Positions 22,007 to 50,943 of a DNA stretch of 64,000 nucleotides are shown here, piece after piece. How positions within the stretch are numbered: position 1 is the stretch's first letter; each line of letters opens with the position of its first letter. The position numbers and the translations under genes were made by a program. Location of the stretch: the IMG/VR virus record IMGVR_UViG_3300023174_000039, positions 62,001-126,000 of that record. One strand, 5' to 3'. The notes below the pieces were generated by a model that worked only from the letters and a program-made list of their open reading frames with translations, was not told the DNA's origin and made no database searches.

Positions 22007-23197
22007 ATGAAATCAACTGAAAATATCAGCACCTGCAGTTTTTGCAACAAACACAAAGATGCAGTAACCAAACTTATTGTAGGTGAAGAAGTTGCAATTT
22101 GCAACGAATGCGTGGACTTGTGCCAAACATTATTGGTAGATCAACCTGAGGCAAAATCCGAAGAAGCTAGTCTTGACCCTAGAGAGATTAAAAATCATCT
22201 TGACCAATATGTAATTGGGCAGGACAATGCCAAGGTCATGCTGAGTGTGGCCATTGCCAACCACTACAAACGCATTAGAAACAAAGATGTCAACACTGAA
22301 ATTGAAAAAGCCAACATTCTCATGCTTGGCCCCACAGGTTCGGGCAAAACATTGTTGGCTCGCACAGTGGCACGTTACCTAGATGTACCATTTGTGATTG
22401 CCGATGCTACTAGTCTAACCGAAGCAGGTTATGTGGGCGATGATGTGGAAAGTTTGATCAGTCGCTTGTATGCTGCCGCTGGGGGAGATGTTGAAAAAAC
22501 ACAACGCGGTATTGTGTTTGTAGACGAAATTGATAAAATCAGCCGCAAAAGCGAAAGCACCAGTATCACACGAGATGTATCCGGTGAAGGCGTACAGCAA
22601 GCCTTGTTAAAACTAGTAGAAGGCACCAAGTGTCGCATCGTGCCACAAGGTGGCCGCAAACATCCAGGCGGCGACAACATAGAAATTGACACACGCAACA
22701 TTTTGTTCATTGCCGGTGGCGCATTTGTTGGGCTAGACAACATTGTTAAAAGTCGTGTTCAAGGCACAGGCATTGGGTTTGGTGCAGAAGTAAACAGCAA
22801 AACAGCCGGAGATCTACACATTGACAAAACCACTCCTGACGATCTTGTGAGATTTGGACTTATTCCTGAGTTTGTGGGAAGGTTTCCTGCTTGGGTCGCA
22901 CTACGAGAACTAGACAAAAAAGATCTTGTGAGAATCCTTAAAGATGTCAAACATAACTATGTGAGTCAATATCAATGGTTGTTCAAACAGGACAATGTTG
23001 AACTTGAATTTACATCTGACAGCTTGGAGTTGATTGCAGAACGCACACTCAAAAACAAAACAGGCGCACGTGGATTACACAGTGAACTAGAGCGTGTGCT
23101 AATGCCACACATGTACAACCTAACACGCTATCGTACCAGCGGCATTAGCCATGTGGACATTGATCAGAATTTGGTAAATATTCCCAAGGAGCTTTAA
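22007..23197 (+). CDS. clpX: ATP-dependent Clp protease ATP-binding subunit ClpX
   Basis: C4 zinc finger, [23 protein letters not shown] loop, TGARGL. Confidence 0.97.
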
Positions 23198-23204
23198 TGC
23201 ATTT

Positions 23205-23429
23205 ATGGAAAAATTACACGGCAGATCAGTACTAGTCACGGACGGAAATGTTGATAGGGCATTGCGTAAATTCAAAAAGAAAATACAAGAAACAGGTTTG
23301 TTAAACGAACTTAGAGATCGAGAATTCTACACCAAGCCCACAACTCAACGCAAACTCAACGCCAGTGCTGCCAAAAATCGCTGGAAGAAAAAACTTCGAG
23401 ACCAACAGTTACCTAAAAAACAGTTCTAA
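23205..23429 (+). CDS. rpsU: 30S ribosomal protein bS21
   Basis: VDRALRKFKKK...ELRDREFYTKPT..RK. Confidence 0.92.
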   Translation: MEKLHGRSVLVTDGNVDRALRKFKKKIQETGLLNELRDREFYTKPTTQRKLNASAAKNRWKKKLRDQQLPKKQF

Positions 23430-42158: not shown

Positions 42159-42761
42159 TTATTTTTTAAACAACAATGATGAAGCGATGACCAAGGCAGT
42201 CTGTGCAGCCTCTACGTCATCAGGCTGTTGTTTCCAACCCACGCTGATTTGTCCTATAAACACCCCGGGCTCGGCAGGCACACTGATACGGCACATGTAA
42301 TTCACACCGTTTTCTCTGTAGGCAAATCCAATTAGACTTTGTGGTTTGAGATAGGGACTGCACGGTATTTTACCAGACATGAGTCCAATCACATCATTGT
42401 TGTTGTCGTAGTTTTTGCTGAACAAGCCCACATCCAGGCCGTCGTACTGCTTGATTCTGCCACCATTGCGTGTGGACACAAACACAATTTTTCTTGTGTT
42501 TACCAGGGTATTGACCTCCATGATAGACACCAGTTCTACATCGGTGTTTTTCAACAAGAAATTGTAGGCTTCTTCATATCGGCCATTCATCTTGGGCAGG
42601 GCCTGTTGGGCACGATATGTGGCCATCATGGCATCTTTTTCGCTGTAAACAAACCAGCCCACAAAGCCCAGCACACACAGTAATATTACTGTGAATAATC
42701 TAAAAGGACTTTGCCCGATCCAGTTTAGTATTTCAAGCAGGGCTTCTTTGATCTTGTCCAT
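42159..42761 (-). CDS. single-TM protein with GAF-like periplasmic domain (T4 holin T-like?)
   Basis: N-terminal TM; C-terminal YMCRISVP....FIGQISVGW. Confidence 0.45.
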   Translation of the reverse strand: MDKIKEALLEILNWIGQSPFRLFTVILLCVLGFVGWFVYSEKDAMMATYRAQQALPKMNGRYEEAYNFLLKNTDVELVSIMEVNTLVNTRKIVFVSTRNGGRIKQYDGLDVGLFSKNYDNNNDVIGLMSGKIPCSPYLKPQSLIGFAYRENGVNYMCRISVPAEPGVFIGQISVGWKQQPDDVEAAQTALVIASSLLFKK

Positions 42762-44022
42762 GTGCCTGTTCTTTGTCACAAACAAATGCTGTCACTGCTA
42801 CGTTACCATGCACATGACTTGCTGTGCGAATCATGTCCATCAGAGGATCAACTGCAATCAACAGTACCAACACAGCTTCGCTGGGCAGTTTCAACAAGTC
42901 ACAAACAACTGCTACAGTGGCCACTGTGAGAATACCTGTTGTACCTGCTGATGCAAGCCCTGCCAAGATACTACCAAATAGCACAACTAGTAATCCTGTT
43001 AAGCCTAGTGGTGCATCATAAATGTTGGCAATGAATACTGTGGCAATGGCATAGTAAACGATACTACCAATGCGATTAACAGTGAAGCTGAGTGGCACAG
43101 TTAGTTCAACGCCGCCCTTGTCAAAGTGTAGTTTGTGCAGGGCTTCTTGTGCGTATGGGATACAGGCCAAACTTGAGCGTGAACTCACAGCAACAATCAG
43201 TGTTTCTTTGGTTTCTCGGATCACGGTAGCAAGGCTTAGACCTGAACGTGCCCAGATCACAGCAGTACCTGCCGCAACAACCAACACCCCCCCAACAAAC
43301 TGCTGGAACACAAAGTCAAACATGGTCATGAAGATGCCCACACCAACCTTGCCAACCTGCGATGAAATCATGGCCAACAGCGCAATTGGCAAGAAATAGT
43401 TTAGGAACTTGAAGATGCTGATACTGGCCTGTTGAATACTCTTTAGCACTTCCACCAACATCTTTTGACCTTCTGTTTTCAGGTGCCCCAGTGCCACACC
43501 AAAGATCAAACAAAAGATCACAATCTTTAAGCTCTCACCATTGTTTAGTGTGTTGAAGATGTTTTCAGGAATGAACTTTTCTGCCATCTTGCCTGCATTG
43601 ACAGGTGGTGCAACAGGCATGGGCTCGTGTAAAGTGATATTCAAATCAGTACCACTGTCTTTGTTGTTGACCAGCACACCCAGTTGTGTTTTCTTCTCTG
43701 GTGTCATTTCTGTACCTGTGACCAGCACAGTGCCCACACCAATCACAGCGGCCAGGAACATACTGCCCACAAAGCCAATGATGATTTTGCGTATCAATTC
43801 TTGACTGCCTTCTTTCTGCAGTAGGCCAATGATACCCACCAGGATAGTGGCCAACAAGAATGGTAACACAACAACTTTGAGCAGGCTGATGTAGATGCTG
43901 CCAATGCTGTCAAGACCTGTGCTGAACTCTGGAGCATACACACCAGCTAGAATGCCCACAATGATTGAACCAAGTATGGTCCAGGGGCTGATCAAAAATG
44001 TTTTTAAATGTGCAGTTGTCAT
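42733..44022 (-). CDS. dicarboxylate/amino acid:cation symporter (DAACS, GltP family)
   Basis: Multi-TM; IPENIF, SSRSS hairpin, D...DM.RT in TM8. Confidence 0.92.
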   Translation of the reverse strand: MTTAHLKTFLISPWTILGSIIVGILAGVYAPEFSTGLDSIGSIYISLLKVVVLPFLLATILVGIIGLLQKEGSQELIRKIIIGFVGSMFLAAVIGVGTVLVTGTEMTPEKKTQLGVLVNNKDSGTDLNITLHEPMPVAPPVNAGKMAEKFIPENIFNTLNNGESLKIVIFCLIFGVALGHLKTEGQKMLVEVLKSIQQASISIFKFLNYFLPIALLAMISSQVGKVGVGIFMTMFDFVFQQFVGGVLVVAAGTAVIWARSGLSLATVIRETKETLIVAVSSRSSLACIPYAQEALHKLHFDKGGVELTVPLSFTVNRIGSIVYYAIATVFIANIYDAPLGLTGLLVVLFGSILAGLASAGTTGILTVATVAVVCDLLKLPSEAVLVLLIAVDPLMDMIRTASHVHGNVAVTAFVCDKEQAHGQDQRSPA

Positions 44023-44031
44023 GGGGTGTCC

Positions 44032-44850
44032 TTATTTCTTTTCAGCTTTGTAGCGATCCATCAACTTCTTGGTGTCGATGTTGTTGTATTCATTTTTAAT
44101 CACGTAGTTGACCACGCTCAACAGTTGAATAGCCCGGGGATTCACTGCCACAGCAATGTTGTCTACACTGTCAGAGATGGTGATTGACTTGGTAGTAATT
44201 GCCGCATCTGGCTTTTCAAATGCAATTTTCTTGATTTCAAATTCATCACGGTAAGCGGCAGCGATGTCGCCACGTGTGACTTTGTCAATGATCACATCCC
44301 ACTTGTCTTCAGGCAGGAATTGTGCATTGGGAAAGTTAATTCTAGCAAATGTGTCATAACTGGAGTTGCGGATAAAACTTATCTTGCCGTTGAATTCTCT
44401 AATCACTTGATACACTTCTCTGCCCTGAGTATTCTGGCTCAACCATAGTCGATTCACAACTAAACTTTGGCGCAGTTTGATATAGGGATCACTGAATCTA
44501 ACTACTTGTAACCGTGGACCAGTTACGGATAGTTTACTAACAGCAATATCTGCTCTGCCATCTCTGACCTGTTCTACAACTTCTGCGAAGCTTTCTGCGT
44601 CTCGTCTAAACTGTACAGGAACTCCAAGTAACACCCCAATGCGTCGAGCGATCTCAACGTCAAGGCCGTGTATGGTATCCTCGTCTCCGGAAAAGAATGG
44701 AGGATTGTCTTTTTTGGTCATTGCCACCACAAGCACATTGGCTTTTTTGATTGCGGCAATATCTGCGGGTAGTGGTACAGTTGATGTTGGTAACTGTGCA
44801 GAAGCAACAGTGGCCAACACAAGTAATACGGTGGCGAATAGTTTTTTCAT
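44032..44850 (-). CDS. periplasmic amino-acid substrate-binding protein (SBP family 3)
   Basis: Signal peptide; NPPF, GLDVEIA, ADIAVS.LS.T..R...V.FSDPY. Confidence 0.92.
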   Translation of the reverse strand: MKKLFATVLLVLATVASAQLPTSTVPLPADIAAIKKANVLVVAMTKKDNPPFFSGDEDTIHGLDVEIARRIGVLLGVPVQFRRDAESFAEVVEQVRDGRADIAVSKLSVTGPRLQVVRFSDPYIKLRQSLVVNRLWLSQNTQGREVYQVIREFNGKISFIRNSSYDTFARINFPNAQFLPEDKWDVIIDKVTRGDIAAAYRDEFEIKKIAFEKPDAAITTKSITISDSVDNIAVAVNPRAIQLLSVVNYVIKNEYNNIDTKKLMDRYKAEKK

Positions 44851-44911
44851 TTGTATGTGTCCATAATGTAGGTATTTAATACCCAACGTTATTTATGTTT
44901 TTAGATGTTAC

Positions 44912-44940
44912 AAAAAAAAGTCCCTTGCGGGACTCTTTTT
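44912..44940. terminator. bidirectional-type terminator hairpin
   Basis: A-tract, AGTCCC-TTGC-GGGACT, T-tract. Confidence 0.8.
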
Positions 44941-45208
44941 ATTTTGCCGCTGGCTTGGGTGCTTTTGGCTTGGGTTCTGCTTTGGGTTTTGCAGGTGCCC
45001 GGGGTTTTGGTGTTGCCTTGGGTTTTGCAGGTGCTTTGGGGACAGGAGCGGCAATTGTTGCCTCAGTCCCTGCTGGCACAACTTCAACCTTGGTTTCAAC
45101 CACGGGTGCTGATTCAACCTTGGTTTCAGGTGCTGGTGCTTCGACTTTGTATGGTGCTTCGGGAATTGAAGGCTTGCCAAACAAGAATTCTTTGATTTTT
45201 GCTAACAT
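44939..45208 (-). CDS. Pro/Ala/Lys-rich small protein
   Basis: SD AGGAG and TAAATA upstream; KAPAKPK repeats. Confidence 0.7.
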   Translation of the reverse strand: MLAKIKEFLFGKPSIPEAPYKVEAPAPETKVESAPVVETKVEVVPAGTEATIAAPVPKAPAKPKATPKPRAPAKPKAEPKPKAPKPAAK

Positions 45209-45297: not shown

Positions 45298-45302
45298 AGA
45301 AC

Positions 45303-45353
45303 ATAGGGTGCTGAATAGGTCGGGCCTTATAGTAAACTCGCTTAAATTAGGAG
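45303..45353 (+). promoter_or_regulatory. ROSE-like leader similar to the hsp20 leader
   Basis: Hairpin with TGC.GA...GGTCGGG; CTCGCTT opposite AGGAG. Confidence 0.55.
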
Positions 45354-45359
45354 AAAATT

Positions 45360-45635
45360 ATGTTTACATTAGACGCAACAATCGACGCCGTTCAAACCGG
45401 TAAAAAACAATTTGTCAAGACATTTGTGCAAAACGAAAAAATTGCCGACGCAATGAACACTTTCATTGATGAGCAAGCCGCTTACACAAAGAAAGCTGCC
45501 AAAGTTGGCACAGACACATTTGCCACTTTGACCAGCGAAATGGTCAAAGCTTCACAAGAAGCCATGAAGTTTGACTACACCAAGTTTGGTGAAGGTATCA
45601 TGAAGGCCTACTCTGCTACTACTTCTAAAAAGTAA
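45360..45635 (+). CDS. phasin-like protein
   Basis: Small amphipathic helical Ala/Lys/Thr-rich protein preceded by a PhaR-like box. Confidence 0.55.
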   Translation: MFTLDATIDAVQTGKKQFVKTFVQNEKIADAMNTFIDEQAAYTKKAAKVGTDTFATLTSEMVKASQEAMKFDYTKFGEGIMKAYSATTSKK

Positions 45636-45659
45636 TTGCCCTGTACTTTTAACAAGTAC

Positions 45660-45710
45660 TTGACATCTAATCCGGTTCGTGCTATAATAACGCATGTACC
45701 GGATTTTTTT
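45660..45710 (+). promoter_or_regulatory. consensus sigma70 promoter overlapping an intrinsic terminator
   Basis: TTGACA-17-TATAAT with the -10 in the loop of AATCCGGT..GC / GC..ACCGGATT-TTTT. Confidence 0.8.
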
Positions 45711-45721
45711 ATGGAGCAATT

Positions 45722-45874
45722 GTGAAACCTATAACTTTTGTATTACAAATACCCAGACTGCGTAGACGTGCTGTGGAGTTGTATAGCCGCGACACCCCGT
45801 TCAAATCACGTGCAGAAAAATCTAAAATAGTGTACAATCGCAAGATCAAACATCGCAACAAGGACAAAACATAA
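45722..45874 (+). CDS. ArfA-like (alternative ribosome rescue factor-like) small basic protein, not in ORF track
   Basis: GTG start, SD GGAG; DTPFKSRAEKSKIVYNRKIKHRN. Confidence 0.55.
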   Translation: MKPITFVLQIPRLRRRAVELYSRDTPFKSRAEKSKIVYNRKIKHRNKDKT

Positions 45875-46047
45875 TGGGCGGTAAAGCAAAATCAATCTAT
45901 CTCACTGTACTCCCGAAAGGATCACACATGAGCGTGTTTAAAAAAATGTTCTTTGAGGCCAAGAGCTACAACGAATATGTCAAGTCGGAAGAGTTCAAGA
46001 CCAAATATCCCCGAGAACAGTTTGATATTGTAAAAGAAACCTACTGA
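45874..46047 (+). CDS. small hypothetical protein (57 aa, not in ORF track)
   Basis: TAATG overlap; MGGKAKSIYLTV...VKETY. Confidence 0.65.
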   Translation: MGGKAKSIYLTVLPKGSHMSVFKKMFFEAKSYNEYVKSEEFKTKYPREQFDIVKETY

Positions 46048-48036: not shown

Positions 48037-48081
48037 GTAATTATCTAAGCAGTTTATTGTTTAGATAATCATTTGTACATT

Positions 48082-48654
48082 ATGGCACTAGATACTACCA
48101 CAACCGAAAACTCTCACAGTCAAGACCTAGCCGATAACGGCATGTATGTTTTCATGGGCGAAGTAGACAATGAAAGCATCCGACCCATTATTGAATGGAT
48201 CTTGCACGAAAACTTTGTTGTAAAGAAAAAGCGCAAAGAACTCCTGCTGATGATCTGTAGTGAGGGTGGCGATATGAGTGCCGCCTTTGCCTTAATAGAT
48301 GTGATGAAGAGTTCCAACATCTTTATTAAAACCGTGGGCCTGGGGCAAATTGCATCAGCAGGCCTGTTGATCTTTCTAGCAGGATCACCGGGACGCAGAA
48401 CACTCACACCTAATACTTCAATCATGAGTCATCAATATGCCTGGGGCAGTGACGGAAAACATCATGAGTTGTTGGCTACCATTAGAGAATTTGAACTCAC
48501 GCAACGTCGCATGGTTCAGCATTACATAACCTGTACAGGATTGAGTGAAGAAGATATCAAGCAACACCTGTTGCCACCACATGATGTTTACTTGAGTGCC
48601 GAAGATGCCCTGAGACTAGGCATCTGTGATCATATCAGCCAGCTGGCTCGTTAA
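48082..48654 (+). CDS. ClpP-like protease (divergent)
   Basis: ICSEGG, GQIASAG (Ser), MSHQ (His), HDVYLSAE.A..LGICD. Confidence 0.88.
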   Translation: MALDTTTTENSHSQDLADNGMYVFMGEVDNESIRPIIEWILHENFVVKKKRKELLLMICSEGGDMSAAFALIDVMKSSNIFIKTVGLGQIASAGLLIFLAGSPGRRTLTPNTSIMSHQYAWGSDGKHHELLATIREFELTQRRMVQHYITCTGLSEEDIKQHLLPPHDVYLSAEDALRLGICDHISQLAR

Positions 48655-50319: not shown

Positions 50320-50943
50320 ATGCCCAGTTTGATCCCAATGGTTGTAGAACAAACCTCAAAAGGCGAGCGCAGTTACGACATTTACAGTCGGCTGCTTCGA
50401 GACCGTGTCATCATGTTGGACACCGAAGTAAGCGAACACATAGCCAGTTTGATTGTGAGTCAATTGTTGTACCTTGAAAGTGAAGACCCTGACAAGGATA
50501 TTTCGCTATATATAAACAGTCCCGGCGGTAGTGTCACTGCTGGACTTGCAATCTACGATACCATGCAGTTTATCAAACCAGACGTTCATACCATTGTTAT
50601 AGGACAAGCTGCCAGCATGGGCAGTTTCTTGGCACAAGCAGGTGCACCGGGCAAGCGTTTTGTGCTGCCTGAAAGTCGCACCATGATTCACCGTGTGAGT
50701 TCAGGTACTCCCAGCACACGTGGCTCAATCCATGTGCAGGAACTGGAGTTTGAAGATGCTCGCAGAATGTTTGAAGAATCAAAACGCATCAACCAACGTC
50801 TTACTGAATTGTATGTCAAACACAACACAGCAGGCAAAACCTATGAAGAACTGTACGAGGCCATGAAGTTTGACACCTTCTTGAGCGCCGAGCAAGCAGT
50901 GGCATATGGACTTGCTGACAAAATTGTAACCAAACGAGTCTAA
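50320..50943 (+). CDS. clpP: ATP-dependent Clp protease proteolytic subunit
   Basis: [42 protein letters not shown]. Confidence 0.97.

Follow-up and report, generated by a model that had tools for sequence, protein, structure and literature searches.

Does a small basic peptide, encoded by a phage immediately behind a perfect sigma-70 promoter, belong with the ribosome-rescue factor ArfA, and would such a peptide rescue stalled ribosomes or block them? Ribosome rescue is essential in bacteria, and ArfA is regarded as a back-up system under tmRNA control, with a narrow distribution in some beta- and gamma-proteobacteria. The locus lies in a stretch of 64,000 nucleotides (the window), which corresponds to bases 62001-126000 of an IMG/VR virus record of 331,654 bp with a CheckV completeness of 95%; the viral record agrees with the phage origin assumed in an earlier note on this DNA. 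The phage genome has a GC content of 44% and contains 24 tRNA genes, and the sequencing runs containing its DNA are freshwater lake and river metagenomes. Neither a tmRNA gene (aragorn) nor an RF-1 domain was found in the phage genome. The phage thus appears to have no release factor or ArfB of its own, and hydrolysis by its products, if any, must rely on a host factor.

The ORF occupies 45722-45874 on the plus strand and consists of a GTG start, 50 codons and a TAA stop at 45872-45874; the coordinates, start, stop and peptide given in the earlier note are all exact. A Shine-Dalgarno sequence, GGAG, can be read at 45713-45716, 5 nt upstream of the GTG, and gene calls in relatives that start too far upstream render the same GGAGCAATTGTG as ...GAIV. 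The 50-aa peptide has a net charge of about +12, with K, R or H at nine of the last 18 residues, and terminates in the hydrophilic sequence NKDKT. The gene is present in a single copy in the source record. The next small ORF, with 57 aa (45874..46047, plus strand) and no family match, starts with an ATG that overlaps the TAA of the ArfA-like gene (TAATG), which makes translational coupling of the two likely; the overlap between the stop and the downstream ORF measures 4 nt in relatives. The upstream gene (45360..45635, plus strand) encodes 91 aa, is syntenic in relatives and shows a weak similarity to PF09361 (Phasin_2) with an E-value of 0.014, below the cut-off. Metatranscriptome contigs cover the 91-aa gene in all four freshwater libraries, so it may be highly expressed, and its leader has a sub-threshold Rfam match to ROSE_3 (45302-45365; 25.7 bits, where the gathering score is 43) that is probably due to chance. 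Over the ArfA-like ORF, contigs were found in one of the four freshwater RNA libraries, where DNA carry-over is possible and the contigs show no transcription start; they are a weak indication that the ORF is expressed. Farther upstream, the minus strand carries a dicarboxylate/amino-acid:cation symporter of 429 aa (42733-44022; PF00375), which is 77-93% identical to 120 listed metagenomic clusters, a family-3 solute-binding protein (44032-44886) and an 89-aa ORF (44939-45208) with a Pro/Ala/Lys-rich C-terminal half and no Pfam match. An 84-aa gene is located on the minus strand at the relative position of the 89-aa ORF in three relatives (L001, L003 and L004).

The sigma-70-type promoter at 45660..45688 on the plus strand matches the consensus at 12 of 12 positions. 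TTGACA (45660-45665) and TATAAT (45683-45688) are separated by a 17-nt spacer, and an extended -10 TG is situated at 45680-45681. Perfect TTGACA-N16-18-TATAAT sites occur 11 times on the plus strand of the whole genome, which is the coding strand, and never on the minus strand, against about 0.14 per strand expected, as estimated from base composition. In addition, related phages keep a promoter with 11-12 of 12 matches and the 17-nt spacer ahead of the homologous gene in 26 of 31 distinct upstream regions. Such an excess of sites, together with the upkeep in relatives, indicates that the promoter is more than a chance occurrence, in line with the consensus promoter that had been proposed from the letters of the window. 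Most of the 11 perfect sites lie directly 5' of a Shine-Dalgarno sequence and a start codon. The 11 plus-strand sites point to an early gene class that would depend on host sigma-70, in a host with promoters of the proteobacterial type; the proteobacterial host is suggested here solely by these sigma-70 consensus promoters.

The promoter is interleaved with a hairpin (45669-45705) and a T-run (45704-45710), which together (45669..45710, plus strand) are terminator-like for the upstream 91-aa gene and place the -10 box in the loop. The predicted RNA fold of 45630-45725 has an energy of -28.9 kcal/mol with a z-score of -4.5, and none of 200 shuffles was equally stable. The hairpin design is kept in the relatives, with compensatory stem changes and also with quite different stem sequences, and in about half of these related loci the arrangement is that of the window, with a strong hairpin that encloses the -10 box in its loop and has a T-run after it. 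The hairpin and T-run would terminate the transcript of the 91-aa gene, and transcripts begun at the promoter would lack the 5' arm of the hairpin. Terminator-promoter modules of this kind recur in the source genome at record positions 172113 and 81931 (window 19931). We take this module to resemble the promoter-early stem-loops of T4-type phages.

The gene is under purifying constraint, with dN/dS values of 0.15-0.19 against relatives and differences mostly at third codon positions. A word search returned 56 homologous clusters at 90% identity, with lengths of 46-84 aa, all unnamed or called hypothetical, and an exhaustive profile search of 1.84 billion proteins returned 102 clusters at 50% identity (E<=1e-3), nearly all of 38-60 aa. 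One family member (P0224) is named "stalled ribosome alternative rescue factor ArfA" in its source, and the other homologues are hypothetical proteins. In the close subfamily, P11, R14-R16, A17, V18, E19, L20, Y21, R23, P26, F27, E32, Y38, R40, K43 and H44 are invariant; many members of the wider family have almost no N-terminal extension, yet they keep the RRA-x-EL-F/Y...PF core. The gene is carried by 39 IMG/VR loci on contigs of up to 364 kb. Wherever the genomic context is readable it is that of a phage, either a phage lineage of 260-365 kb in size or, in one case, a T4-like contig. Long contigs that carry the gene share a syntenic order of UvdE, the 91-aa gene, the ArfA-like gene, small ORFs, two ClpP genes and a radical SAM gene, and most of their other ORFs have no Pfam match. 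On the T4-like contig, a divergent 48-aa member (L097, 6001-6147) is situated just downstream of gp45, gp44, gp62 and RegA, which means that the family is not confined to the huge-phage lineage; a stem-loop lies 5' of this gene and abuts its start codon. Three further divergent members are found on short contigs of small same-strand ORFs. A tblastn search of 50,697 GenBank phage records with four family members, as short queries and with the low-complexity filter on, gave no match. Some members match PHROGs 2701, 6310, 20887 and 18092, all of unknown function, and relatives in cultured phages hence probably exist. The ArfA-like ORF is a real, conserved, phage-borne gene.

Is the product related to ArfA? 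Scanned against Pfam and NCBIfam, the window protein has no match even at E<=10, PF03889 (ArfA) and PF23876 (DUF7230) included; it does not reach the gathering thresholds of 25.5 bits for PF03889 and 27 bits for PF23876, and no DUF7230 match exists in the phage genome at E<=10. The window protein should hence be called ArfA-like and not a certified PF03889 member. When 88 family members were scanned singly, nine matched the Pfam ArfA family (best E 3.7e-4) and 36 matched DUF7230 (best E 6e-7), the latter counted at E<=1. A profile built from the alignment of these 88 members (A4) was compared with 177,635 PDB sequences and gave six matches, all of them ArfA chains, with a best E-value of 5.1e-5. 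The profile of the close subfamily, run against the whole PDB at E<=10, gave four matches, all E. coli ArfA, at E 0.16. In hhalign, A4 matched the Enterobacteriaceae ArfA alignment with a probability of 94.8% (E 4.8e-8) and a diverse nine-sequence ArfA alignment with 91.5% and a score of 37.4. A word search with E. coli ArfA and a genome-contig scan supplied Enterobacteriaceae ArfA only, and the nine-sequence alignment includes five divergent ArfAs from a class-wide genome search with PF03889. The reversed alignment scored 12.0 and 40 column shuffles scored at most 12.3, compared with 37.4 for the real alignment, so the match does not merely reflect a shared richness in Lys and Arg. The narrow subfamily of the window, taken alone, reached 65-77% with ArfA and 9% with bacterial DUF7230. 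Furthermore, DUF7230 and ArfA clusters were among the nearest neighbours in a language-model embedding search.

By profile methods, the 50-residue phage protein is thus a stripped-down relative of ArfA. The ArfA-like identity claimed in the earlier note is upheld at the level of family profiles (E 5.1e-5 against the PDB, hhalign probabilities of 91-95%, and controls near 12 against 37), but it does not extend to membership under any Pfam or NCBIfam threshold. The absence of a profile match, which that note had named as a counter-argument, is not what we found. The E. coli ArfA core that it quoted corresponds letter for letter to the translation of MG1655 arfA.

The phage peptide has the size of the mature factor of E. 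coli ArfA (YhdL; PF03889; PDB 5MDV, 5MGP, 5U4I and 5H5U), and the two have several elements in common: a short helix, a D-x-x-F motif, an R-x-E-K-x-K strand region that pairs with RF2 beta-5 in ArfA, and a Y-x-R-K-x-K-H block with the KH motif in a tail that is about half basic. They are 34-40% identical over 35-41 columns, with no gap except one three-residue deletion. The aligned pairs (phage/ArfA) are A17/A15, V18/I16, E19/E17, L20/A18, Y21/L19, D24/D22, P26/L24 and F27/F25 in the first part, R30/R28, E32/E30, K33/K31, K35/K33, Y38/Y39 and R40/R41 in the middle, and K41/K42, K43/K44, H44/H45 and N46/N47 at the end. Residues that are invariant or nearly so in the phage family coincide with conserved and functional positions of ArfA, including A17/A15, E19/E17, D24/D22, F27/F25, E32/E30, Y38/Y39, R40/R41 and K43-H44/K44-H45.

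In E. coli ArfA, a short helix spans residues 15-24, and L19, L24 and F25 form a hydrophobic patch that binds W319, V198 and F217 of RF2 (PMC5378476, PMC8012679). F25 and residues 25-30 contact RF2, and the backbone of residues 25-29 extends the RF2 β-sheet (PMC8012679, PMC5378476). Within the alignment, the elements that would contact RF2 are kept: F27 and E32 never vary, L20, Y21 and P26 do not vary within the subfamily, and these residues align to ArfA F25, E30 and L19/L24. Residues 31-48 of ArfA fill the mRNA tunnel by means of redundant positive charges, contacts between the KH motif and the mRNA channel are conserved, and N47 marks the shortest active truncation (PMC5378476, PMC8012679). 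K43-H44 is invariant in the phage family, and the peptide ends four residues past the N47 equivalent (N46). The AF2 model of the phage peptide is an extended chain with one short helix at residues 17-21 (pLDDT 86), like ribosome-bound ArfA; a Foldseek search of the PDB with this model returned no match, as expected for an extended chain of 50 residues. The predicted complex with residues 105-365 of E. coli RF2 scored 0.26 against a mark of 0.32, which speaks neither for nor against binding.

There are also obvious differences between the two proteins. The KGKGS turn, present in E. coli ArfA and in all 11 bacterial ArfA sequences that we examined, is absent from the phage peptide, where a net deletion of three residues lies between E-K-x-K and Y-x-R-K; the earlier note had stated this absence, and the alignments agree. 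No single residue of the KGKGS motif is essential (PMC6299226). The 16 N-terminal residues of the phage peptide are unrelated to the ArfA N-terminal minidomain and cannot be aligned with it, and it is this minidomain that activates RF2 (PMC5378476). ArfA A18 is replaced by an invariant Leu (L20), and ArfA P23-L24 by T-P. The ArfA variant A18T binds and recruits RF2 without activating it (PMC8012679, PMC5378476). However, divergent bacterial ArfAs have S or R in the A18 column, so the Leu of the phage peptide is not decisive.

The regulation of the two genes differs as well. Bacterial arfA and brfA are expressed from truncated, non-stop mRNAs and are repressed by tmRNA (PMC8012679). In contrast to E. 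coli arfA, the phage gene has no RNase III or terminator hairpin within the ORF and encodes no hydrophobic C-tail; its 3' end is less structured than shuffled sequences (z +1.6), with no in-ORF hairpin. Unlike E. coli ArfA, the peptide is phage-borne and stands behind an early consensus promoter. The stop codon of its own, which the earlier note had pointed out, together with an ordinary mRNA, implies that the phage gene would escape the tmRNA control of bacterial ArfA. With neither a KGKGS turn nor non-stop regulation, the peptide should be made constitutively from the early sigma-70 promoter. Its own stop, hydrophilic C-terminus and unstructured 3' end further suggest that the phage form corresponds to the pre-truncated, active product of the bacterial gene.

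Comparisons with other rescue systems place the phage family near, but apart from, an uncharacterised bacterial family, DUF7230 (PF23876). Neither has the KGKGS turn, and hhalign relates them at 78% over the C-terminal Y-x-R-K-x-K-H half, whereas the bacterial DUF7230 members that we found have an N-terminal half of the N-P-V-A-K-H-A type, unlike that of the phage family. Within the ORF, the bacterial DUF7230 genes (L140, L141, L144, L145; genomes G033, G245, G323, G156) have a canonical terminator or else a long hairpin, and in the longer members this is followed by a stretch that encodes a hydrophobic tail. This is the design of arfA and brfA, and bacterial DUF7230 is therefore likely an uncharacterised family of tmRNA-regulated rescue factors. 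Among 401 sampled genomes of the class, DUF7230 was present in ten and ArfA in six, with no overlap, numbers that are too small to speak of mutual exclusion. A literature search found no mention of DUF7230. Its identity with ArfT was considered and rejected: ArfT carries KKGGSTNKK and has no F25 equivalent (PMC6299226). BrfA of Bacillus and ArfT of Francisella are, like ArfA in design, small and basic rescue factors that detect an empty mRNA channel and depend on a release factor, and BrfA has the KH motif in common with the phage peptide (PMC8012679). Neither has a detectable sequence relationship to the phage peptide, however; BrfA is regulated through non-stop mRNA, unlike the phage gene (PMC8012679), and ArfT, without the F25 equivalent, works with RF1 or RF2 (PMC6299226).

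The phage family is not categorically new, one cultured phage with an annotated canonical ArfA being already on record. Gp10 of Citromicrobium phage vB_CbaS-RXM (OL963731), a 104-kb siphovirus of an alphaproteobacterium, is annotated as ArfA in a one-line mention (PMC8953757). This was the sole published mention that our literature search found, and the search returned no paper studying a phage ArfA. Like the present gene, RXM gp10 is phage-encoded, and it lies in an early-looking block of small ORFs; however, it is of the canonical type, with KGRGSY and a hydrophobic tail, and as a single sequence it shows hardly any relationship to the family described here. In Roseobacter phage CRP-212 (MZ892988.1, 39097-39189), an ORF annotated as "hypothetical protein" has 58% identity with the RXM ArfA over the N-terminal half of the latter, which makes it a candidate for a second canonical ArfA in a cultured phage.

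Other genes of the window also bear on translation and proteolysis. The phage bS21 gene (23205..23429, plus strand; PF01165, E 4.6e-17) is present, as the earlier note had stated, directly downstream of a ClpX homologue with zinc finger and AAA_2 domains (22007-23197). Two ClpP paralogues (48073-48654 and 50320-50943) are located 2-5 kb downstream of the ArfA-like gene, and the ClpP pair is syntenic with that gene in relatives. Since ssrA-tagged proteins are degraded by ClpXP, a link of the phage ClpX and ClpP to ribosome rescue is conceivable. As for the suggestion that the peptide complements phage bS21, what we observe is the co-occurrence of the two genes.

From this evidence, we consider it somewhat probable that the peptide is a rescue factor which is made early and constitutively, depends on a release factor and recycles ribosomes from cleaved mRNAs. 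Host sigma-70 RNA polymerase would transcribe the gene from the consensus promoter immediately after infection, and the peptide would be translated from an ordinary mRNA with its own stop, outside tmRNA control. By analogy with E. coli ArfA, its substrate would be the 70S ribosome stalled at the 3' end of a cut mRNA. The basic C-terminal half (K33-K47, including Y-x-R-K-x-K-H) would thread into the empty mRNA channel, while the helix A17-Y21, P26-F27 and the strand S29-E32 would dock a class-I release factor of the host, RF2 by analogy. The docked release factor would then hydrolyse the peptidyl-tRNA and return the ribosome to the pool, and the phage would benefit by recovering ribosomes at a time when mRNAs of the host, or its own mRNAs under attack by host RNases, are cut. 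Ribosome binding, release-factor recruitment, rescue activity and the benefit to the phage are all inferred from the likeness to ArfA. Several features speak against rescue, namely the failure at curated thresholds, the hhalign probability of only 65-77% for the narrow subfamily, the missing KGKGS turn, the dissimilar N-terminus and the Leu at the A18 position. The earlier note had proposed a constitutive phage factor that either rescues or blocks ribosomes; the phage-borne gene, the lack of non-stop regulation and the early promoter agree with a constitutive factor, and of the two actions we regard rescue as the more probable.

A block is doubtful in our opinion, although part of the anatomy fits it. 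On non-stop ribosomes, the peptide would then sit in the vacant mRNA channel and the decoding centre, like ArfA, but with no activation of a release factor, and would out-compete tmRNA-SmpB and the host Arf factors, for instance so that phage products are not ssrA-tagged and degraded, or so that host translation is brought to a halt. The link to ArfA and DUF7230 is indeed best conserved in the channel-binding half, the N-terminal minidomain responsible for activation has not been kept, the A18 position holds Leu where A18T recruits RF2 without activating it (PMC8012679, PMC5378476), and a ClpX and two ClpP of the phage's own suggest interference with host proteolysis pathways. The family, however, keeps F27, the strand S29-E32 and the hydrophobic L20, Y21 and P26 with little or no variation, and a simple channel plug would need none of these; the A18 column is not small in divergent bacterial ArfAs either, and the RRA-x-EL-F/Y...PF core persists in many members almost devoid of an N-terminal extension. 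It is likewise unlikely that the peptide is a viral inhibitor of rescue, perhaps one that holds RF2 in an inactive compact state as ArfA A18T does. In a further reading, which is compatible with such an inhibitor, the large and diverse phage family may be the evolutionary pool that gave rise to bacterial ArfA and DUF7230, both narrowly distributed.

We see a small chance, too, that an ArfA homologue has taken on a different ribosomal job, such as working with RF1 as well as RF2 in the manner of ArfT, acting on stalls from anticodon nucleases or A-site cleavage in abortive infection, or serving only ribosomes that contain phage bS21. The fold-less basic design is common to ArfA, BrfA and ArfT, whose release-factor specificity differs (PMC8012679, PMC6299226), the operon of bS21 and ClpX also stands behind a perfect early promoter (window 19931), and a channel loop shorter by three residues may alter the tolerance for mRNA 3' of the P site. 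Against this, the profiles match ArfA itself most closely, and the match extends to the F25 position, which has no counterpart in ArfT (PMC6299226). It is very unlikely that the peptide is a small, basic phage protein with no kinship to ArfA, such as a nucleic-acid binder or a leader peptide, which resembles ArfA through convergence or composition. Such a protein would be short and Lys/Arg-rich, without a curated family match and with an empty Foldseek search, as is the case here; but reversed and shuffled controls score about 12 against 37, ArfA is the sole PDB match despite the hundreds of basic ribosomal and nucleic-acid-binding proteins in the PDB, the conserved columns coincide with functional residues of ArfA, and a dN/dS of 0.15-0.19 is at odds with a mere leader peptide. 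A leader peptide was rejected on this low dN/dS together with the family-wide conservation of residues.

The rescue factor thus remains the reading that we prefer. What is new is a large and diverse ArfA-like family, phage-borne wherever its context is readable, that lacks the elements of tmRNA control and heads early operons. As natural minimal variants with neither the KGKGS turn nor the ArfA minidomain, its members may indicate what channel sensing and release-factor switching require. As a by-product, bacterial DUF7230 is indicated as a likely tmRNA-regulated rescue family. If the proposed rescue role is true, phages would manage the pool of stalled ribosomes during takeover, alongside their own tRNAs, bS21 and ClpXP.
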